From: Selaginella moellendorffii
Taxonomy: Eukaryota > Plantae > Lycopodiophyta
Direction: 5' to 3'
Length of the DNA stretch: 64,000 bases
Assembly (NCBI RefSeq): GCF_000143415.4
Contig: NW_003314377.1
Coordinates: forward strand, 372,001-436,000
Below, piece by piece: positions 1,890 to 45,708 of this stretch (position 1 is the stretch's first letter; each line of letters begins with the position of its first letter). The translations under genes and the position numbers were made by a program. Below the pieces are notes generated by a model. It was not told the origin of the DNA. It saw only the letters and a list, made by a program, of their open reading frames with translations, and searched no databases.

Positions 1890-1972
1890 TGTAACAAACT
1901 AAAGAAAACAACTTGAAAGCCAATTCATAGAGTTTAAATATAAAGGGAAAAAGCCTATATATCAGAGTGCAC
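1890..1972 (+). mobile_element. First ~80 bp of a degenerate Cassandra LTR, interrupted; it resumes near 11101
   Basis: TGTAACAAACTAAAGAAAACAAC...GAGTGCAC aligns by eye with the reverse complement of the intact Cassandra LTR at 12645-12839. Confidence 0.65.
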
Positions 1973-2552
1973 GGGAAAGTATGGCTCTGATAGCGTAGTC
2001 GGATGCATCAACTTGAACTATAAATTCATGTTTCCAATTCGGTCGAGCGAGTATGGGTGCTCGAACTAAATGATTTTTCAGCGTCTGAAATGCTGTGTCA
2101 CACTCAGAAGTCCACTTGAATGGATTTTGCTTCTTCAACAAGTCAGTTATCGGCCTGCTGATCCGAGCATAATCTCGGATGAATCGTCGGTGATATCCCA
2201 TCTTTCCTAGAAATTTTTGGACACCTGAGACTTCTGTTGGCAGTTTCATATTGAGAATGATTTCTGTCTTTGCCTTGTCTATCAGTATTCCTTGTTTGCA
2301 GACTACATGTCCGAGTAGAACTCTTGATTTGACGAAAAAGGTGCATTTCTCTGGATTCAGAGCGATGTTGTTTTCCTTGCATTTGTTGAAGAAGTTTTGA
2401 AGGCATTCCAAGTGCCTTGCTTGATTTTTAAAGACGCTAAAGTCATCCATGAAGACTTGCATGAAGTTGGTCAGGTATTCCTAAAAAGTCTCAGTTATGA
2501 TTCTATGGAAGGTGAACGGGGCGTTTGTTAGGCCGAATGGCATGCATAAATA
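1962..2552 (-). pseudogene. Ty3/Gypsy (non-chromovirus, Tat/Athila-like) pol fragment: C-terminal half of RT plus start of RNase H
   Basis: [12 protein letters not shown]...VFMDDFSVF (YxDD motif), LNPEKC, FLGKMGYHRRFI, VDASDYAI; one in-frame stop near 2481. Confidence 0.9.
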
Positions 2553-4562: not shown

Positions 4563-5712
4563 ATGGATGCTCATCTGGGCCTGGTGACCAATGCGATTTC
4601 TGCGGTGCAAGCGATTCTCAAGGCGAGGGAGGAAATACAGGCTGCGCCAATCAAAATTGTGGACTTAGTAGAGCAGGTGCAGAATGCGGGTAGGCTACTT
4701 TCGAGGGTTCAAGGGCTTCTAGAGCAGGTGTCTGATCCTCAGACACTAGAATCACTGCTTCCTCCTCTGCAGCAACTTGGGCAGGAGCTGAACATTGCCA
4801 AGATTAAAGTGGAAGAGTACAAGTTCAAGGCTACTGGATCGACATCTGTAGTATCTGGAATCAAGACGGTGCTCGGCTATGGTGTTGCAACGCGCAACCG
4901 CAAAGTCGAAGACATCTCCAAGCGCATCCAAAATGCCTTGGTGCAGCTAGACCAAGCGTTGGGTGCGGAGGTCTTTGGGAAGTTCTTTGTCACACCTGCT
5001 TCTGCTGCTGCTGCTGCTGGTGACTCTACTCCCGAGTTAATTTCACAGCTGGACAAACTCAGCATAGAGTCGCTAGACTCTGAAGAGTTCAGTGTATCAG
5101 TGGAGATTGGGGGGATTGAGGGGAGTGAGTTCCATCCGCCCGAACCTGGATTGGAGGTGAAGGTTCAAGGAGACGAGGAAAATCGAGTTGCACGAGATGG
5201 CGGATATGAGCTGCAGAGTTCTAGCAAGCTAAGGTTTGAAATCGCTGTAGAAGATGATGGGTTCTTTTACATCATCACGTATGATCCCGAAGAAGGTGCA
5301 CCTCTGCTTTACTATCCGAAGGTCTCATCAGCCAACAACAGCCTTCGATGGTATGCTTTGAGACTGTGTGTCTTGTCTATGTAATTTGGGTGTTGTGCTG
5401 TGCAGCAAGTTCAATCGCGTCTTCCCAGACAGTAGCAGGCATAAGCATGATCCAAAAAGCTTTCGAGTTGAAAAGAGTGGCCTGAAACGTGTAGGACAGC
5501 AAGCCGTTTACTTCGTCCTCTCTCAAACCAAGTTGCACCAAGGTAAGATTGTTTATCTCGAAGCAAATTCAAACTATTGTTTAGTATGATGACATTTGGT
5601 TCCAGATACACCTTCTAGAAAGCTCGAAATTGAAGAGGTCCAACAAGAGCTACAAGACGACTCCCACCAGATTTATGTTCGGAAGTTTGACTTCGACATC
5701 CTTGGTTCGTGA
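4563..5712 (+). CDS. 343-aa protein: N-terminal MLKL/RPW8/HeLo-like four-helix bundle, Ala-rich/acidic linker, DUF4384-like C-terminal domain. Exons 4563-5350, 5406-5542, 5606-5712
   Basis: Two GT-AG introns (55 and 63 bp) join in frame to TGA at 5710-5712. The first ~140 aa are amphipathic helices. The C-terminus LRFEIAVEDDGFFYIITYDPEEGAPLLYYP...RVFP...FRV...GQQAVYFVLSQTKL fits the DUF4384 pattern by eye. Confidence 0.8.
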
Positions 5713-5756
5713 AGCCATCTTCTCAAATTAGGCGACACAAAGTAGATTACATCCAT

Positions 5757-8700
5757 ATGGCTATGGAACAAAAGCAAGTAGAGCGTGAGATACAAAGCCG
5801 CATTAGTACAGGTATGACGCTGTTCTCAACCGATGTCCAAGCCTCAGCACGCGAGCTTCAGTTGGGCATTAGTTTGGCAGATGAGAAGCTTGACCAAGGC
5901 AGCCACATGTGGAGCACACTAGTGGCTGGGGGAAAATGCATGCTAGGCCAGATCCTGTACATCACCAAGGATTACCCAAGTGCAGTCAAGTACTTGAAGC
6001 AGGGAATAAGTCTAGGGGACTGCCGAGCTTCGTCGTACTATTATCTTGGCAGATCATATGCTCGCGTGGGAGCACTGGACGAGGCATTGGAACAGCTACA
6101 TAGATGCATCGGTTTGGACGGGATAGAGTGGCTGGCCTGCATTGCCAGTTCCGAAGTTCAGCAGGAGTTGAAAAACTATGTGGAGGCAAGTCGAATGGCT
6201 GCAGAAGCAGCACAACGCGCACACAATGCTGGTAGCTTCGCGGATTCTAGCAACTACTGGGCAGTTGCCGGTTCGATAGAGGTTTTGCACACAGGTGATT
6301 ACAAGACTGCGGCAGCCCATCTGGTTTCTTCCATGGAGGCGGCTCTCCTGGTGGAGGACCCTGAACTACAGCTCAGTCGGCTGAGTGATGCAAGTCCGTT
6401 TTTAGTTGATTGCATAGACACTTACAAAGGCTCCTCGCTTGAAAATCTAGAGACTGAAACAGCTGAGCCCAGGGATCATCTAGAGACTGAAACAGCTGAG
6501 CCCAGGATCCCGCATGCGCAGAAGGTAGAAAGATCCTTGAAGCTAAAAAGAGCAGAAGCATATGCACATATGGGAATGGCGCAACTTGTACTGCTCAATT
6601 TAGTCGACAAGGCTTGCAAATGTCTCCATGCTGGTGCTGAATTGCTGCTAAGCGAACATGGATCTTCCGAAGATGCACAAGTAAGAGGAGTGCTGTTCAT
6701 GTTACAGTACACACTTGCCGGGGTTCGCCTTGAGTATGGTACACCCGAGGAAGCTTTGGGGCTGTACGCGCAATGCAAGCTTTTGGCTCCAACACCAAGA
6801 CTCGAGCTCAAGTGCGATGTTCACCTGGCTCACTGTGTCAAGCGCCAAGGTCATTTCCGGGAGGCCACCCAGATGCTGACCAGGCTTTTGACAAACAAGC
6901 AAGGTTTGTTGGCCGAGGAGCGTGATGTCAACGCTCAACTTCTGTTTGAGCTTGGGCAGAGTCTGCTTGGGACTGAGAACACAATCCAAGCCGTTATCAA
7001 CCTTGAGGCCGCAAGAAGACTCTGGGAGGAAGTGGCAGACACTTCAGGCTGCCTGCAGTGGTGCTGGTGCGTTCTTTTCCAAGCTTATATGTTGCTCCAG
7101 CGGTTCTCAGATGCATTGGATCTTGCTAAGCTGATATCAAGTAACTTGGAGAAACTGGCACCAGGCGCAGAGCAGCTCTGGTACTTGATCAATGGGGGTA
7201 ACTTTGCTTTTTTCGAAGATCACGAGTTTGTACGGGACAAGCTTACAGCATGCCTCGACACTGGCAGCCAGGAACACGATTGGCTGGAAAAAACCAGCAT
7301 ACTCCTCAATCTGGGGAACGCTTACCGGCAACTTGGGGACTCGGATGCAGCTTTGGAGAAATATGAGGAAGTGTTTGCCTGCATTTCTAGGCTTTCGATA
7401 CAGGAGGAGGCTCTAGTCCAGGACACTCTGGCATGCGTGCACCTCAACCGCTCCGTGGTTTACAGGAACCAGGCGCTAGAGGAAAACCAGAGCAGGTGGA
7501 TCGAATTAAGCAACAAGCAACTGACTGAGGCACAAGCAGCAGTGACAATATATCAGCAAGCTGGTCAAGCCCCTTCAGAGCTGGGATTCGCGTACCTTTC
7601 ACAAGCAGCTGCTCTCATCAACCTAAAGAGCTATAGAGATGCTGAAGCATGTCTAGACAGGGCTGAAGCTCTAACTAGCGGCAGCGAGCTTAAAACTGCC
7701 AAGGTCATGCTCGTGCGAGCTGGACTCCTAGAGGGCAAAGATGAACTCGAGAGAGCACAAGTCTCTGCACACAAGGCACTCTTACTGCTAATGGAGATGC
7801 AGAGTAGGTTAAGAGGCCTGGAACATGCATGGGTGACTTTACTTGCTGGAGACATGAGGAAGGCCTTCTATTTTATGCAGAAGCTGCTTATTGCAAGCAA
7901 TAGGTACATGGACGCTCTCTTATGGGCCGAGAGGAGCAGGATGCGGCTATATTTCTACAACATCAACCAACGAACTGTGTAATGAGATTACCACGTTTGT
8001 TCACAATCTTGATTTCTTTTAACTCTGAAACAGGCAAGATGGAGAAGAGGGGGGCCTCTTGCGCTTCGACAGGGATGACCAGTACGCCATTGATTGCATC
8101 CGCGAGGCCGTGACAAGCTGTCCTCCAGGATCGGCGGTGGTGGAGTACACGTGTCCAACAAGTACGGAGGACGTCTTATACATATACGTCGTTCAGCAGG
8201 AGCAGTGTGCAGTTCATGTGCGGCAGGTACGCGTCTGTCGAGTTGTATGCTCTACTCAACCTATCATCTCAGGTGGACTTGAAGAATTTTTTCAGCAGCA
8301 AGCCGAACAAGAGGCTAGGCAAACGCTTGGACGCTCTTGTGAAGCGAACTCGGACAGCCATTGCCAAGGACACAGCTGAAGTTAAGGTCGGCCTGGGGAT
8401 CCTTCACGAGTTACTCATCGTCCCAGTTCAGGAACTCCTGGCGAGCTGCAGCAGCGTAATCTTTGCTCCCCATGACGTCCTGTCACTGGTGCCATTTGCT
8501 GCACTGTACGATGGAAACGAGTTCCTTGTGAAAAACAAGGCAGTGGGGACGGTACCATCACTTCGAGCTCTGGGCCGCTGCCTCATCCGGCAGGAGGAGT
8601 TTGCCAAGAGAGACAGAGCAACAGCTTTCGTGGCCGGAAATCCAGAGCCGATGGGCCTGGGTCTACCCCAGCTCAAAGGAGCAGCTCAAGAGGCGGGTGA

Positions 8701-9362
8701 AGTTGGACAACAGCTTGGTGTGGACGCTGTTATAGGCTCCGGAATGACGAAGGCACAGGTGATGAGCAATATGAGCAAGGCCAGCGTCGTCGTGCTCGTC
8801 ACTCACGGGCTTTTGGACCGCTACTTTCAGCATGGGGCTCTAGTCATGCAAGCGGGCTCCACAGCGAGTGTTGCTGGGATGCGAGAAGCTGCGAGCAGTG
8901 CTCTAGTCATGCAATCGGCGGCTGCGAGTGCTGAAGCTGCAAAGTGCAGAACTGATGAGGTGATCACAGCCAAGGAGATCGAGACACTCGAAGTTCAAGC
9001 AGGCTTGGTGGTTCTCAGTGCTTGCCACGCTGGTGAAGGTCAAGTCTCAAGCGAAGGCTTGCTTGGACTGGGGCGTGCTGTGCTTCAAGCAGGTGCTGTT
9101 TGTGTTCTGGTCACGCTGTGGAAAGTGAACGACGCTGCAACTCCAGAGCTGGTAACAGGTACGCCAAAGCCAGGCCCAGCTTCTGTCTCATTTTTGTGCT
9201 TCTGTTTTATCAGGATTTTTTGACGAACTCCTTAGAGGACGACGTAATGTTCACGACGCTCTCAGAGCAGCAATGCTCAGAATGCTACACTTAGACATGC
9301 CAGTTCGTATATGGGCACCTATGGTGGCCTTTGGTTCGCCAGGACTGATGTTAAATTGGTGA
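5757..9362 (+). CDS. ~1149-aa TPR-repeat plus CHAT (caspase HetF associated with TPRs) protease. Exons 5757-7978, 8034-8226, 8273-9158, 9214-9362
   Basis: Three GT-AG introns (55, 46, 55 bp) restore one open frame. TPR motifs (YYYLGRSYARVG, LNLGNAYRQLGDSDAALEKY), ALLWAERSR, IFAPHDVLSLVPFAAL, catalytic VTHG (His codon 8804) and LVVLSAC (Cys codon 9023), TLWKVND, and C-terminal ALRAAML...WAPMVAFG. Confidence 0.92.
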
Positions 9363-9449: not shown

Positions 9450-9678
9450 TCAATATGTTTCTTCATTGTCACAATCCTGTTCAACCTCTGTATAGTCTTT
9501 TTCTAGGGCTGCCAAGTCTTCTCTGGCAATGGAGAGCTCTCCCTCTTCCATACCTTCACCAACATACCAATGCACAAAAGCCCATTTAGCAAACATAAGA
9601 TCGAATTTGTGACTTATGTGAGAAAAAACTTCTGCAACAGCAGTGTTGTTGCTAATCATGCACACTGCCCTCTTGACA
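9450..9678 (-). pseudogene. TUA: Alpha-tubulin C-terminal fragment (captured)
   Basis: [62 protein letters not shown] is clearly alpha-tubulin; it is 5'-truncated and has substitutions at conserved residues. Confidence 0.93.
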
Positions 9679-9682
9679 CTAG

Positions 9683-11100
9683 TGCGTACACTCCCCATGG
9701 GCTGATGAATGCTGTTTTTTGTTGATCTTCTTTTGCAATGTGTACTTGATTGAATTCGCTGAATTCATCTAGGAATGAATACATCTTGTGTCCGGCTACC
9801 GAATCCAGTATTTCATCCATAAATAAAATTGGAAATGTGTCTGTGGTTGTGCTCTCGTTCAACTTTTTGTAGTTCACACATATTCGCAGTTTGCCATTTT
9901 TCTTGGGCACTATAACTAGTGGCGACAGCCATCTAGCATTCTGTATCAGCCTGATGAATTGAGCTTCAATTATCTTATCGAGTTCGGCTTTAACTCTCTC
10001 CTGGAAGTTCGGGTTCATTCGGTATGCTCTTTGTTTCTTCAGTGTTCCTCCTGAAATGAGTTGAATTCGGTGTGTATAGAGATCAGGAGGTATGCCCCAT
10101 AACTCTTTGTATGACCATGCGAAAACATCCTGATTAAGTCGCAAAAGGTCGATAACTTGTTGTCTGAAGTCGGAATCGAGTTCCTGAGCTATGAGAACAT
10201 TTCGGGGCTTTTCGCTGGTCCCAATGTTTACTGTATCAAGGTCTTCACTGACTTTGATCTTTTTTTGGAGAGTGTCTTCTCCTTCAACTAGTGCAGGAGT
10301 CTCGTTGAGGTCCATCTTTCTTTGGCTGTAATTCCTTGGGTTTGATATCCGGAGCTTCACGTTGATTGATCTTTGGCCATGTTTTGGCTTCTTGAGCAGT
10401 AGTCAGCTTTGCAAGTGGGCTGCTGATGAAGGGGAATTGATATCCTCTCAATGATGATGCTCCAAATTGATTAACTCCAGGAACTTGAGAACTCGGTGTC
10501 CGTCTGTCAGGACTAAATTCCCGGGTCTTGGGTATCGGATTTGGAGTCTGAGTCTGACTGTCTTGTTGCCCGAACTTAGTGAATATTCGTTTGAGAATGT
10601 TATTGCGTTGTTGTTGGAGTTGTGATTTTCTGGCAGATCTATCTTTACCTTCTGTTTCTTTCTGCTGCTTTAATCGGGTCACCTTTAGCGAATGTTATTG
10701 AACTCATTCGACTGCATGCTTTGGACTGGGGTTCCTGAATCAAAGACAGTGTATTTGTATTGTTGATTGGTGTAGATCAGTACAAGTTTCTGAGGATCTA
10801 CCACCATAATCACATCGTAAAGAGCTTTCTCAAGCTGTTCGAATGACAAATTTGGAGCTGCTAACCAGCTGAGATCAATATCTGGTGTACAGATCAGTCC
10901 TATCCTCCTGATGACGTTTATACGTTTCAGTCGAGAATAGAGATATTGTGGTCTCAGTATAGGGGGACGTTGTGATGGAATGGGACAAACAATGATTGTC
11001 AGAGTGTCCCAATCAATGTTGATATTTGCTAAGGGAGAGTTGATGATCTCCTGTGTGATCAAAAGTCGGAGAGGGCTGACGATCACTTGATACTCAATTG
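9683..11100 (-). pseudogene. Ty3/Gypsy pol fragment: N-terminal half of RT and upstream region, same element as 1962-2552
   Basis: [60 protein letters not shown], which continues exactly into YLCMPFG at 2552. Confidence 0.88.
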
Positions 11101-31340: not shown

Positions 31341-33731
31341 GATGGTCCAAAGTTGAGTTGAGCTCAATTCAACACAAGTCAACTCAAGTCAACATAATCA
31401 ATTAGAAGTCTTACAAAGGAAATATAAATTGAACAAATGAAAGTTCTAACAAACTTTAAAATATTTAAATACGTAAATATTTGAGTTAAAAGTTTCTATA
31501 AGATTGAATTGTTTAAAAAAAAAAAAGTTCACAAGAATCTATCTTTTATAAAGCTATATTATTTTATTATGACTATTGTTACAGTTGTTATATTTTGATT
31601 TGACTACTTAATATTTTGAATATTTTTATAGTTGTAGATACTATTCCTTCATTCAAAAGATTTTTGAGGGTTCTTGAGAAGATGGGAAGCAAGGAAAATA
31701 CAAGATGTGTGAGTAACAATTGTAGTGCAAAAGAATGTGAGAATGCTAATTTTGTTTCATTACCACAATCTCCATATTACACTCCTATTCGTTTTTACGT
31801 TTTTATTACCCATTTGAAAATGTGGAGACCACTATCATGGTTGATAAAAATGCTTCTGTTACTTTTGAAACAACAGTTCAGAGTAAATGAAATGAAGAAA
31901 TGAACAGCACGGTGGAAAGCACCAAGAAATCTACTCCATAACACTTTCCATGACATTTGTAATTTAAAAATTAATTCATATTAAAAACTGTGTTTCCTGC
32001 TTATATCACAATCCTCTCATATGATAAGACCAAGATATATTTTTGTAGTGAATCCTCATTAAAAGTTTTCGCAAGTTTTTTGTGAATAATAATAAAAGAA
32101 ATTGAAATCTTTCGAAAGACTCAAAAGTAATATCACATCAAAGAATCAACTTTATCTACATTTCCAAGACTGAAAAGCAATCTCACATAAGGGAATGGTA
32201 GCGTGCCAATGTGCTCTGCCACTATAATGTGTTCTATATTTCCCTACAGTCTATTTCTCTAAACATTTGGCATGCATAGAAAAGAATATATGTGTAGTAA
32301 AGTAGGATTTCATTATAATGATAAAGCATGTGTATATATGATAATCTAAAATTCTAGAAGCTCTTATATTTATAAGCAAGCTATGATTATGAAGCCCCAT
32401 TTCCAAAACTGACATTTAAAGAATCTGAGTATCGTCAGTGTTATAATAAATAAACCTTATTCCCGAGACTAAAACTTAGTATATAAACTATCTAGAAAAG
32501 TTATAGTCATTATAGTTTTTTTTGTTCTCCTTGAGCTCCTTGGAAGTTTGTATTGAAATGGCTCAAAGGAAAGTCACTGCTACTTGTACTTAGCCCCCCA
32601 ACATTTTATATTAATCTCCACCTCCATCCCCAAGTTCTACCAACATTCTACCTTCACCTCCATATAATAATCCTTTTTCTACTGAGGGCTTTAGTGAAGT
32701 TGAACTAGAGCTCCTTATATATGAAATTCTGAATCTTATTATTAGATAGGGATTGCCTCCAATGCTTCAAAAGCAATGCTACATGTTCTTGCTCCTGACA
32801 TAGCGGGACTACTTGAAAGCACAAAACATTATTACATTCGGTGTCTAATATGCTACTTTTTCTTAGACAAGTGGCTTTATGGGTTTACAAACTTTTCTTG
32901 AGCACTGTAAGAATTGCCCAATGGCGGGTTTGGAAAATGTGCATGTGTGGATGTACAATAGATTCAAGAATGAGTTACAGACATATATATTTTCTCACCT
33001 TCACTTATAGTTTCCATGATGTAGATAGCCCTTCTCATCATGTTCTCAAATAATTCTGGTAGTCCTTTCTCTTTGTTCATCAAGCAGACATTAAGGAAAT
33101 CCAGAGTTTCTATCTGTCGCTTATACGAAAGCTTCAATTTTGCGATATTATAAATTATATCATCTGGAGTTTTGTTCACTACAAAAGTAAATATGCATAA
33201 TTGAGAAAAATGAAGTGTGATAAAAAAACTTACATTCATGAGAAGAAATTTCAGCTATAGTCTCTAGCCACTCCTTCGGCCTACGATTGTCTGCAATGTA
33301 TCTTAGTTTCTTCAACTTTGAAAAATTTGCATGCTGAATTTTATGCTCAATTTGTACGAACTCAGTTGAGAGCTCTTCCCGACTCTTCTCCCGATATACA
33401 AGTTCATAAGCATCTTATTTGACCTTCACCAAAGGTTAAAAACCAAAACAATTAAAAGAAGCCCTTATAAAATGAAAGGGAAAGACATACTTTGCACTAT
33501 ATAGTGAGCATAAAACTAATTGAGTTGTTGAACAAAGTTGTACCGTCATTTCAAGTGCGTGAGTGATGAACAAGTGTTGCAAGATCATCATCATAATGTT
33601 CGCAGATGTCATCCTCACTCAAGTCTGCTAAAAATTGAAGTTGCTCGATGTCATGGATAAAGTTTTATTTTTGAACAGCAAACTGCCCAAGCCTGGATTT
33701 AAACACAACAAAACAAGTTAAAGTGGAGTTA

Positions 33732-34898
33732 TGTTAAACATAAAATCCTTAGGCCCCAAAGTGGGTGCCATGTGGTAGTGGCCGAAATGAAAGCCAAATG
33801 AGCGTAACATGTTTGGACTAAAAGCTCCGACTTGAAAAGTTGAGAGCGAGAGTGGAACTCCTAAACAAAGGGCTCGAGGAACGAGCACGAAGCAAGCAGT
33901 AAGTGAGTCTCTAGAGAAGGGACACAAAAGGACCAACACATGATATATGGAAGACTCGAGACAGAGTCTAAGATGGAGTTCGAAATGGACTTGAGATGGA
34001 GTCCAAGATGGAGTCTGAGATGGACCTGAGATGGAGTCTGAGATGGAACCGAGACCGAGACCGAGACCGAGTCCAAGTCTAAGTCCGAGATTGAGACCGA
34101 GTCCGAGTTCAAGTCCGAGTTCAAGTCCCAGTCCGAGTCCAAATACTAATATAGGTTGTTGGGTGAAAGCCCAAAGCGATTGTCCCCTAGGGGGGGGGGG
34201 CTACAAGGAGAGTGTGGGGGTTAAACCCTAGTGGAGCCAGTTTGGCTAGGAAAGGTTAATTTGGCCCAGGAAGGCTGTACCCAAGTATTGGGTGATGAGA
34301 TAACCATTGGGAAGTCCAAGGCTAAAGTGAATATGAACTAACAAGCGAGGTAGCTTGGTGAAGTATTCAAAAGTCGACTCTAGTTTCCCCGAGAGATCGA
34401 ATGGTCAATGCTCCCAATCCAAGTATGGGTGGCATTACCTACTTGGATACCTAGCGTGGCTCAATGAAACCTCGCTCTAAACCCATGGCTAAAACACCCA
34501 AAGGCTGTAAAAGGGATATTGGGAAGGCTATTCCCCATGTTTGTGGGCATTCTAAGGATGCTGAATCTAAGATGATCACTCATGGATGGATGCCCCAGTC
34601 TTTGAGAGACAGGACTGTGATGTAGGTGGTGTTGGACCACTGGTGTCACCAAGGTGAATGGGTATGGCCTTAGAGTAATGGGTTGATATGTCAATGATAC
34701 TTTGGGGCGTCGGTCATGGGATCAGACACATGGAGCACTTGGACCCAGTGCAATGGTTGAGTGGCATAGATGCCATTCTCGGGGCTAGCAAGCCCCACAT
34801 CCTAAATTGGACTTATAGAGGTTGTGAATGAGACTCCTCCAAGTGGTCAGAGGTGTGGTTAAGTGACTAAAGTAGAATAAAAAAATTAGTCATTTACA
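33732..34898 (+). mobile_element. Solo LTR of family X (older, internally deleted)
   Basis: Reverse-complement match to the other copies; TG...CA ends; near-TSD AGTTA/AGTTG. Confidence 0.85.
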
Positions 34899-43896: not shown

Positions 43897-45708
43897 TGTA
43901 AGCGACTAAGGTTTCCATTTTACTTTAGTCATTTAACCGCACCTCCGACCACTTGGAGGAGTCTCATTCACAACCTCCATAAGTCCCAGTTAGGACTTGG
44001 GGCTTGCTAGCCCCGAGAATAGCATCCATGCCACTTAACCTTTGCACTTGGTCCAAGTGCTCCACGTGTCTGATCAGGCACCACCGACATGTCGGCCTGT
44101 TACATTAAGGCCATGCCCATTCACCTTGGTCACACCGGTGGTCTAATGCCACTTGCATTATAGTCCCGTCTCTCAAAGACTGGGCCATCCGTCCGTGAGT
44201 GATCATCCCAGATTTACTCCTTAACATCCTTAGGATGCCCGCAGACATGGGGAATAGCCTTCCCCGACAACTCTTTTCCAGTCCCCACCAAGTCCCTTTC
44301 TGTCCATGGCCATGTTCGCCATTGAGGAAGGGCAGAATGAGTAGAGTATAGACCTTTGATCAAACGATCATAAGCTAGAGCTTTCTCCAGGAAGAAGGTC
44401 AAAGGTCAAAGCGATCAGTCCTTATGAACACTGCCACTAGATCAAGGCTCGCAGGCTCGACCTCTAAATCCCACTATCCTTTGGGATTTCTTCACCATGT
44501 GACCGTATCCTTGGTCACTGCACTAGAGGACTGCTCCTCTTCCCTTTCACCGTTTGGGACTTTGGGACAACATTTCGGAACACCGTGGCCTTACGCAAGC
44601 CTCATGGGTACTCTCCCTACCTTTCGCCTTTAAGTGCTCTAGCCATGGGCTTAGAGTTAGGTTCCGTTGAGCCACGCTAGGTATCCAAGTAGGTAGTGCC
44701 ACCCACACTTGGATTGGGAGCATCGGCCAGTCGATCTCCCGGGGGAACTATAGCTGGCTCTTGAACACTTCACCAAGCTACCCCACTTATCGGTCTGCGT
44801 TCACTCTAGTCTTGGACTTCCCAGTGGGCAGCTCATCACCCAACACTGGGTATAGCCTTCCTGGGCCAAATTGGCCTTTCCTAGCCCAACTGGCTCCACT
44901 GCAGTCCTCCCCCTTAATATACTTTTGGAGCTCACCAAACCCCCCAGGGTCTGGGAGACGAACACTTTGGGCTTTCACCCTCTCAGACTCGAACTCGGAC
45001 TTGGACTCGGACTTGGACTTGGAGTTAGACTTGGACTCAAACTCAGACTCGGGCTCGGGCTCGGTCTCGGCCTCTGTCTCGGTCTCGGTCCCGATCTCGG
45101 TCTTGGTCTTGGTCCCGGTCTCGGTCTCGACTTCAGACTCCATCTCGGGTCCATCTCGGACTCCATCTCGGGTCCATCTCGGACTCCATCTCGGGTCCAT
45201 CTCGGACTCCATCTCGGGTCCATCTCGGACTCCATCTCGGATCCATCTCGGACTCCATCTCGGATCCATCTCGGACTCCATCTCGAACTCCATCTCGGGT
45301 CCATCTCGGACTCCACCTCGGACTCCATCTCGGACTCCATCTCGGGTCCATCTCGGACTCCATCTCGGGTCCATCTCATACTCCATCTCGGACTCCATCT
45401 GGGACTCCATCTCGGACTCCATCTCGAACTCCATCTCGGGTCCATCTCGGACTCCATGTCGTGTCCATCTCGGACTCTTCCACGTGTCATGTTTTGGTCC
45501 TCTTGTGTCTCCTTTTCTAGAGACTCACTCATGGCTCGCCTTGTGCTTTTTCCTCGAGCACTTCGTTGGGAGTTCCACTCCCGCTCTTGACTTTTCAAGT
45601 CGGAGCTTTTGGTCCAAACATGTTATGCTTGTTTGGCTTTCGCTTCGGCCACTACCATGTGGCACCCTTTCGGCTCCACTTTGGGGCCTATGGATTTTGT
45701 GTCTCACA
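43897..45708 (-). mobile_element. LTR of family X, probably the 3' LTR of a truncated minus-strand element
   Basis: TGTAAGCGAC...GTCTCACA; no TSD; purine-rich GGGTGGTGGAGT (PPT-like) abuts it on the minus strand. Confidence 0.88.

Follow-up and report, generated by a model that had tools for sequence, protein, structure and literature searches.

Known plant cell-death executioners are helical bundles carried on NLRs (CC, RPW8/CC-R) or on pseudokinases (plant MLKLs). Executioners activated by proteases (gasdermins) occur in animals, fungi and bacteria; to our knowledge, none is known from plants. Here we describe two adjacent genes of the lycophyte Selaginella moellendorffii, located in a stretch of 64,000 nucleotides (contig NW_003314377.1 of NCBI RefSeq assembly GCF_000143415.4, positions 372,001 to 436,000 of the forward strand), which was analyzed as a whole and is referred to below as the window. 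Gene 1 (4563-5712, plus strand) encodes a protein in which a helical bundle is followed by a β-sandwich, and gene 2 encodes a protease with TPR and CHAT domains. By analogy with described modules, the gene pair suggests that early land plants may possess a death switch set off by a protease.

Several of the closest described systems combine a TPR-CHAT or other caspase-like protease with a partner protein or domain. In Podospora anserina, a TPR-CHAT protease from the same gene cluster activates a fungal gasdermin (PMC12881547). DUF4384 is the C-terminal domain of one group of Csx30 proteins, and Csx30 is the substrate of the TPR-CHAT protease Csx29, which cuts it in a flexible linker (bioRxiv 10.1101/2022.08.17.504292). 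In bacteria, DUF4384 is also found fused to caspase-like proteases (orthocaspases) (PMC7475262); it recurs with caspase-like proteases, and Ser/Thr kinase-DUF4384 fusions are among the bacterial cases (bioRxiv 10.1101/2025.01.12.632604). Our literature searches found no paper combining HeLo with DUF4384. For the CHAT domain in combination with Selaginella, Physcomitrella or Marchantia, the term "CHAT domain" was absent from the 12 best-ranked results. Judging by title and abstract, none of the papers retrieved for the CHAT domain, MLKL and bryophytes together reports this plant module.

Architecture of the gene 1 product

Gene 1 starts with an ATG at 4563 and ends with a TGA stop at the end of exon 3. 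The spliced coding sequence of 1032 nucleotides corresponds to 343 codons and the stop. Exons were searched individually; analyses of the full-length product were run on the public protein P0028, whose sequence is that of the spliced gene. The regions of the protein map to the window as follows.

4563..4991, plus strand: four-helix bundle, MLKL/HeLo-like, residues 1-143; from helix prediction and superposition of a paralogue model
4992..5030, plus strand: variable, Ala-rich linker, residues 144-156
5031..5090, plus strand: conserved helix and acidic patch, residues 157-176; consensus V..L..LA....DDE, with L163 invariant
5091..5712, plus strand: β-sandwich domain, residues 177-343, split by two introns; from the paralogue model
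5223..5526, plus strand: DUF4384-like core, residues 221-303, crossing intron 1 at the exon 1/2 junction; from a PF14326 match

We consider this architecture of bundle, variable linker, conserved helix and DUF4384-like sandwich near certain. The original prediction, made from the letters of the DNA, had proposed a layout of helical bundle, linker and β-rich domain, and both the sequence and the paralogue model bear it out.

N-terminal helical bundle

A single-sequence AlphaFold2 (AF2) model of exon 1 alone places helices at residues 2-26, 33-55, 59-91 and 103-141 with low confidence (predicted local distance difference test (pLDDT) 41.7). The paralogue P0001 (336 residues, 40% identical), modelled by AF2 with a 26-row family alignment, reached a pLDDT of 76.9 and contains the same four helices at pLDDT ~80-88. 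The P0001 model served as the query in a fold search, independent of Foldseek, of 48,161 solved chains. Among the top matches, its bundle superposes on the N-terminal domain of human MLKL (6ux8_A; Z 11.2, root-mean-square deviation 2.7 over 120 residues, 22% identity), on mouse MLKL (4btf_A; Z 11.0, 24% identity), on Arabidopsis MLKL3 (AtMLKL3; 6ka4_A, Z 10.7) and on the CC-R domain of NRG1.1 (7l7v_A; Z 9.6, 19% identity), on a scale where a Z under 13 does not settle a match between helical proteins and ~11 is reachable by unrelated helical bundles. We set the MLKL matches above other bundles of similar Z because their identity in the structural alignment is 22-24%, compared with 5-10% for most other helical matches.

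Profile matches in homologues point in the same direction below threshold. P0008 matches MLKL_N (PF22215) at E 4.6e-5 (23.4 bits against a cut-off of 27), and P0010 and P0015 match PigL_N (PF17111) with 27.0 bits (cut-off 27.2) and 26.1 bits, respectively; no family member reaches the Pfam threshold for PF22215 MLKL_N, PF17111 PigL_N or PF17107 SesA. The ESM-Atlas neighbors of the helical half are weak (0.77) and bear SesA or PigL_N. MLKL appeared at E 0.1-0.2 in a profile search of the PDB, sequence searches of the PDB gave no significant match, Foldseek against the PDB gave none at E ≤ 0.001, and no RPW8 match was seen. The fold match of the paralogue and the sub-threshold MLKL_N and PigL_N matches support an MLKL-type bundle: as modelled, the N-terminal half is likely an MLKL/HeLo-type bundle whose resemblance stays below formal membership.

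Two other identities for the protein were rejected. Plant MLKL proper combines HeLo, brace and pseudokinase, and neither P0028 nor any homologue gave a kinase family match. A gasdermin was dismissed on the grounds that the N-terminal domain is all-helical and that no gasdermin was among the fold matches.

C-terminal DUF4384-like domain

In the P0001 model, the strands of the C-terminal half extend from 173 to 334 at pLDDT 80-94, and the part corresponding to exon 3 forms a helix and the last strand. PF14326 (DUF4384) is the top Pfam match on the full 343-residue product and the only one below E 0.7; the match is sub-threshold (E 0.0032, 18.0 bits) and covers profile positions 6-79 of 81. DUF4384 is likewise the only or top Pfam match in P0029, P0001, P0020 and P0002, and the second after MLKL_N in P0008. 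Coverage of the profile is again 6-79 of 81 on P0029, and runs from 5/6 to 63-66, at equivalent residues, on P0001, P0002, P0008 and P0020. Pfam searches with single exons detected no DUF4384 and nothing useful, only a chance EDD match on exon 3.

For residues 165-343, every ESM-Atlas neighbor is a bacterial DUF4384 cluster (10/10 best named, 0.88-0.89, 182-185 shared features). The solved structures that match the β-domain of P0001 are generic sandwiches only (TRAP, PEBP, RhoGDI and Pycsar AGS-C; Z 6-7), and no chain labelled DUF4384 surfaced. As modelled in the paralogue, the C-terminal part is a β-sandwich of ~165 residues, and its core resembles the mostly bacterial DUF4384. The label "DUF4384-like" given in the original prediction is justified as a resemblance; formal membership is not.

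Genetic coupling to a TPR-CHAT protease

Gene 1 is directly followed by a protease gene that starts 45 bp past its stop codon.

5757..9362, plus strand: gene 2, TPR-CHAT protease, RefSeq LOC112340437, 1149 residues

The product of gene 2 matches TPR families and the CHAT domain PF12770 (E 2.9e-39), and its open reading frame (ORF) is 100% identical to P0027, RefSeq XP_024520692.1. A related-loci search with a four-sequence family alignment revealed a second pairing on the metagenomic locus L001: a gene 1 homologue (30% identical) and a TPR-CHAT ORF of 1420 codons are separated by 2.8 kb and lie on opposite strands, in divergent orientation. The CHAT domain at L001 is 49% identical to that of gene 2. 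The THG His (8804-8806) and the LSAC Cys (9023-9025) of gene 2 are conserved with the L001 homologue, and the catalytic motifs are intact. Gene 1 and a gene for a TPR-CHAT protease (caspase-like, clan CD) are genetically coupled, and the pairing recurs at L001 in a different arrangement. At both loci examined, the protease gene is adjacent, as in a two-gene executioner module.

Linker and conserved helix

The original prediction had described the 33 residues between the two domains (144-176, window 4992-5090) as an exposed linker and cleavage zone. Residues 144-156 match this description: they are variable, and the equivalent stretch of P0001 is modelled at pLDDT < 50. Between conserved anchors, the linker spans 15 to 65 residues across the family. 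Residues 157-176 do not match, as they carry a conserved helix and an acidic motif. In the P0001 model, this segment is helical at pLDDT ~79-84, runs into the first strand and is part of the C-terminal module. The position of the helix is reminiscent of the MLKL brace. A second variable loop (13-57 residues) is found just before the family-invariant R208 of the R.AR[ED]GGYE motif.

Instead of being cut, the gene 1 product may be a docking partner, tethered to the TPR-CHAT protein by its DUF4384-like domain and activated by induced proximity or oligomerization, as in CC-NLR resistosomes or HET-S/HeLo, while the protease acts on other substrates. MLKL itself is not proteolytically activated, and nothing between bundle and sandwich is conserved except a structured helix, as opposed to a cleavage motif. 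The direct fusion of bacterial DUF4384 to caspase-like proteases and kinases also suits a module for interaction or sensing better than one for inhibition. However, the linker is variable and disordered and resembles a protease-accessible site, the CHAT domain still has its catalytic His and Cys, and all characterized pairings of an executioner with a CHAT protease act through cleavage (PMC12881547). We regard docking without cleavage as unlikely, if clearly conceivable, and tentatively favor a bundle that would be released by proteolysis.

Gene model and splicing

The exons and introns of gene 1 are as follows.

4563..5350, plus strand: exon 1, residues 1-262 and two bases of codon 263; donor G|GTATGC at 5350/5351
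5351..5405, plus strand: intron 1, 55 nucleotides, GT..AG; acceptor at 5405/5406
5406..5542, plus strand: exon 2, residues 263-308 and the first base of codon 309; donor at 5542/5543
5543..5605, plus strand: intron 2, 63 nucleotides, GT..AG; acceptor at 5605/5606
5606..5712, plus strand: exon 3, residues 309-343 and the TGA stop

The translation of exon 1 is identical to residues 1-262 of P0028, and the 343-residue P0028 contains the three exon translations (262, 45 and 34 residues) exactly, at residues 1, 264 and 310. P0028 corresponds to XP_002991257.1 / EFJ07685.1 / SELMODRAFT_429611 / LOC9635820 isoform X1 of Selaginella moellendorffii and is annotated as "uncharacterized". Since the exon translations match P0028 letter for letter, the spliced model of the original prediction, with its two canonical GT..AG introns and its product of 343 residues, is the RefSeq model. 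The accompanying remark that a plain ORF track misses the C-terminal part was also correct: unspliced, the ORF from 4563 comprises 273 codons and stops at 5384 within intron 1, losing 80 residues. An independent homologue on locus L006 encodes the entire architecture within one unbroken ORF of 374 residues.

Family-invariant residues are present in all three exons of gene 1; those encoded by the two downstream exons are R267, F269, P270, D278 and P279 in exon 2, and V333, F338 and D339 in exon 3. Among the homologues predicted from ORFs only, many predictions end within ~10 residues of the position of intron 1, which suggests that this intron position is old and conserved across the family.

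RefSeq lists a second isoform, X2 (P0029, 309 residues), without the 34 residues of exon 3 that make the last helix and strand of the β-domain. An alternative acceptor lies within intron 2, after the AG at 5583-5584 (site span 5583-5589). An exon starting at 5585 would end in ...LHQV-stop, which is the C-terminus of X2, and from this match we infer that the 5585 acceptor gives rise to the isoform.

Gene 1 and gene 2 could also be a single gene. The first JGI annotation contains a public model, EFJ07738.1 (P0032, 1447 residues), which bridges the gap between the gene 1 stop and the gene 2 ATG (5713-5756) by a putative intron of 107 nucleotides (5705-5811) and joins both frames into a bundle-DUF4384-TPR-CHAT protein, in which DUF4384 would be an accessory domain of the protease. 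The splice sites for this join, G|GTTCGT and ACAG|GT, are present, a gap of 45 bp is unusually short between eukaryotic genes, and DUF4384-protease fusions exist in bacteria. In contrast, RefSeq annotates two genes, of 343 and 932-1149 residues, and so do the JGI models for the other haplotype scaffold. At L001 the two families are on opposite strands and cannot be fused, and full-length homologues in four other species share a C-terminal F-D-[IV] ending. A fused gene is highly improbable, and we treat the locus as a pair of genes encoding a putative effector and a protease. The protein collection places the 343-residue P0028 in a cluster represented by the 1149-residue P0027, so that its own record was missed in both homology searches; this odd clustering probably arises via the fused model P0032.

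Family distribution and origin

With exon 1 as the query, HMMER retrieved 15 proteins at E ≤ 0.001 from 1.84 billion representatives, none of them a bacterial, fungal, algal or seed-plant protein. The named family members are only Selaginella moellendorffii paralogues, which are ~40% identical to the gene 1 product, and proteins of Diphasiastrum complanatum, Ceratodon purpureus and Riccia fluitans. Word-index protein searches were blank, or almost so, for exon 1 and for the family alignment. On this sequence evidence, gene 1 is a real, publicly annotated but uncharacterized gene of a small family whose named members all come from lycophytes, mosses and liverworts.

The original prediction held that a DUF4384-like domain in a plant gene would point to bacterial ancestry. 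Our results do not bear this out: no bacterial protein was found at E 0.001, intron 1 is apparently conserved and the family is spread over bryophytes and lycophytes. A tblastn search of P0028 against plasmids gave no match, and the neighbors of the TPR-CHAT genes at two cyanobacterial loci (25-26% identity) are MazG and DUF1980, with no DUF4384. Any transfer would have to be old, given the apparently conserved intron and a family shared by bryophytes and lycophytes. The argument for such ancestry is that DUF4384 and TPR-CHAT are mainly prokaryotic and are known to be associated with each other.

A metagenomic species contains three further copies of the family. Those at L002:528-1391, L003:3847-4653 and L004:2-790 are 87-90% identical to P0003 and have frameshifts and stops in exon 1, unlike the copy on L001, which adjoins the CHAT gene and is intact. 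The occurrence of an intact copy along with such broken ones suggests birth-and-death turnover.

The frameshifted relatives, together with the retroelement-rich neighborhood of gene 1, would also be expected if gene 1 itself were decaying, that is, a non-functional duplicate in transposon-rich DNA. Its three exons are open, however, with canonical splice sites and family-invariant residues kept in every one of them. The identical protein is on record from two scaffolds, and RefSeq lists two isoforms. We consider decay extremely improbable and regard gene 1 as an intact candidate effector gene.

Genomic surroundings

A reverse transcriptase on the minus strand is split around the gene pair, at 1965-2462 (-) and 9659-10360 (-). 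Positions 1-97 of the RVT_1 profile match at ~9.7-9.9 kb, and positions 150-204 together with RNase H match at ~2.0-2.5 kb. As the two RVT_1 halves flank the gene pair, the two-gene module lies inside an interrupted retroelement polymerase gene.

This location can be read as a sign that the two genes are neighbors for historical reasons, for example through joint copying into a retroelement, and that gene 1 has no role in cell death, its product being a generic coiled coil or helical bundle with a generic binding sandwich. Helical-bundle Z scores of the size obtained can be non-specific, and the β-domain matches generic sandwiches only (Z 6-7). On the other hand, three independent lines lead to the MLKL/HeLo/SesA group, namely the 22-24% identity, the sub-threshold matches of homologues and the ESM-Atlas neighbors, and the pairing recurs in a distant homologue with another arrangement. 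We find an absence of any death role improbable, and prefer to see the pair as a probable MLKL-type bundle protein coupled to a protease that may activate it.

Elsewhere in the window, a repeat of ~1-2 kb with internal tandem structure occurs in at least four copies with 75-85% identity (1-1900, 33700-34500, 44400-45700 and 61800-63000), and an ORF at 47933-49186 (-) has a strong DUF7869 match (E 1.2e-39).

Proposed mechanism

In the mechanism that we propose, the TPR-CHAT protein would sense a signal and bind the DUF4384-like module. The protease would then cut between the helical bundle and the β-domain, and the released bundle would oligomerize on membranes, where it may kill or signal. Such a step would also resemble the way in which MLKL is freed of its regulatory domain. 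We arrive at this protease-coupled executioner because of the analogy with the fungal gasdermin and its clustered TPR-CHAT protease, and because Csx29 cuts the linker of Csx30. Taken as a whole, architecture, protease coupling and an executioner released by cleavage form our best explanation, which we put forward tentatively as having somewhat less than an even chance of being correct.

Several observations weigh against it. The window protein's own model is poor (pLDDT 41.7) and the evidence for its fold comes from a paralogue, at Z values within reach of unrelated bundles; two of these, Sla2 and IncA, score as high as MLKL in the fold search. P0028 has no MLKL_N match in Pfam at E ≤ 1, and all DUF4384 scores in the family are under the Pfam gathering cut-off of 27 bits, the best being 20.6 bits for P0008. 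No PADLOC or NCBIfam model matches gene 1, and no conserved cleavage motif appears in the variable linker in the family alignment. The pairing of the two families derives from two loci, the window and L001. Autoinhibition, binding of the protease, the position of the cut and the attack on membranes are proposed by analogy.

If the proposal is correct, early land plants would combine a helical-bundle effector with a caspase-like CHAT protease, and the gene pair would connect the bundles of NLRs and pseudokinases with protease-activated executioners. It would also assign a function to plant CHAT proteases and give DUF4384 its first functional context in eukaryotes. Expression systems in Marchantia, Physcomitrium or Nicotiana would allow a direct test of the proposal. 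In a broader scenario, which we consider rather less likely than not, an MLKL-type executioner gated by a protease has been retained in bryophytes and lycophytes: the TPR-CHAT sensor-protease would dock on the DUF4384-like sandwich and cut the linker, and the freed bundle would permeabilize membranes. This would be a class of proteolytically activated death effectors distinct from gasdermins, derived from a prokaryotic conflict module and since lost from seed plants.

Comparison with known systems

The bacterial orthocaspase-DUF4384 and kinase-DUF4384 fusions share with our locus the association of DUF4384 with caspase-like proteases. In S. moellendorffii, however, the domain resides on a separate partner, unless the fused model is real, and is a sub-threshold relative only. 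In the type III-E CRISPR Craspase (Csx29 and Csx30), a TPR-CHAT protease is likewise paired with a two-domain protein, and some Csx30 C-termini are DUF4384. Gene 1 differs in that it lacks a CRISPR/Cas7-11 context and a PADLOC match, its N-terminal domain is unrelated to that of Csx30, and it is a eukaryotic, intron-bearing gene.

To the group of MLKL and plant MLKLs, the fungal HeLo, HELL and SesA domains and plant RPW8/CC-R, the gene 1 product is tentatively connected by the four-helix fold predicted for its paralogue (Z 9.6-11.2 and 19-24% identity to MLKL and the NRG1.1 CC-R, Z values that unrelated bundles also attain). It is set apart from this group by having no pseudokinase, NLR or prion-forming partner, and its C-terminal partner domain is new for the fold. 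Compared with the modules that pair gasdermins with proteases, among them the fungal one with its TPR-CHAT protease and the bacterial ones with caspase-like proteases, the N-terminal domain is an all-helical bundle, probably of MLKL/HeLo type, the C-terminus is DUF4384-like, the host is a land plant and cleavage is proposed by analogy. Nevertheless, the organization is the same: a two-gene cluster that pairs a TPR-CHAT sensor-protease with a small protein composed of a killing-type N-terminus, a linker and a C-terminal regulatory part (PMC12881547).

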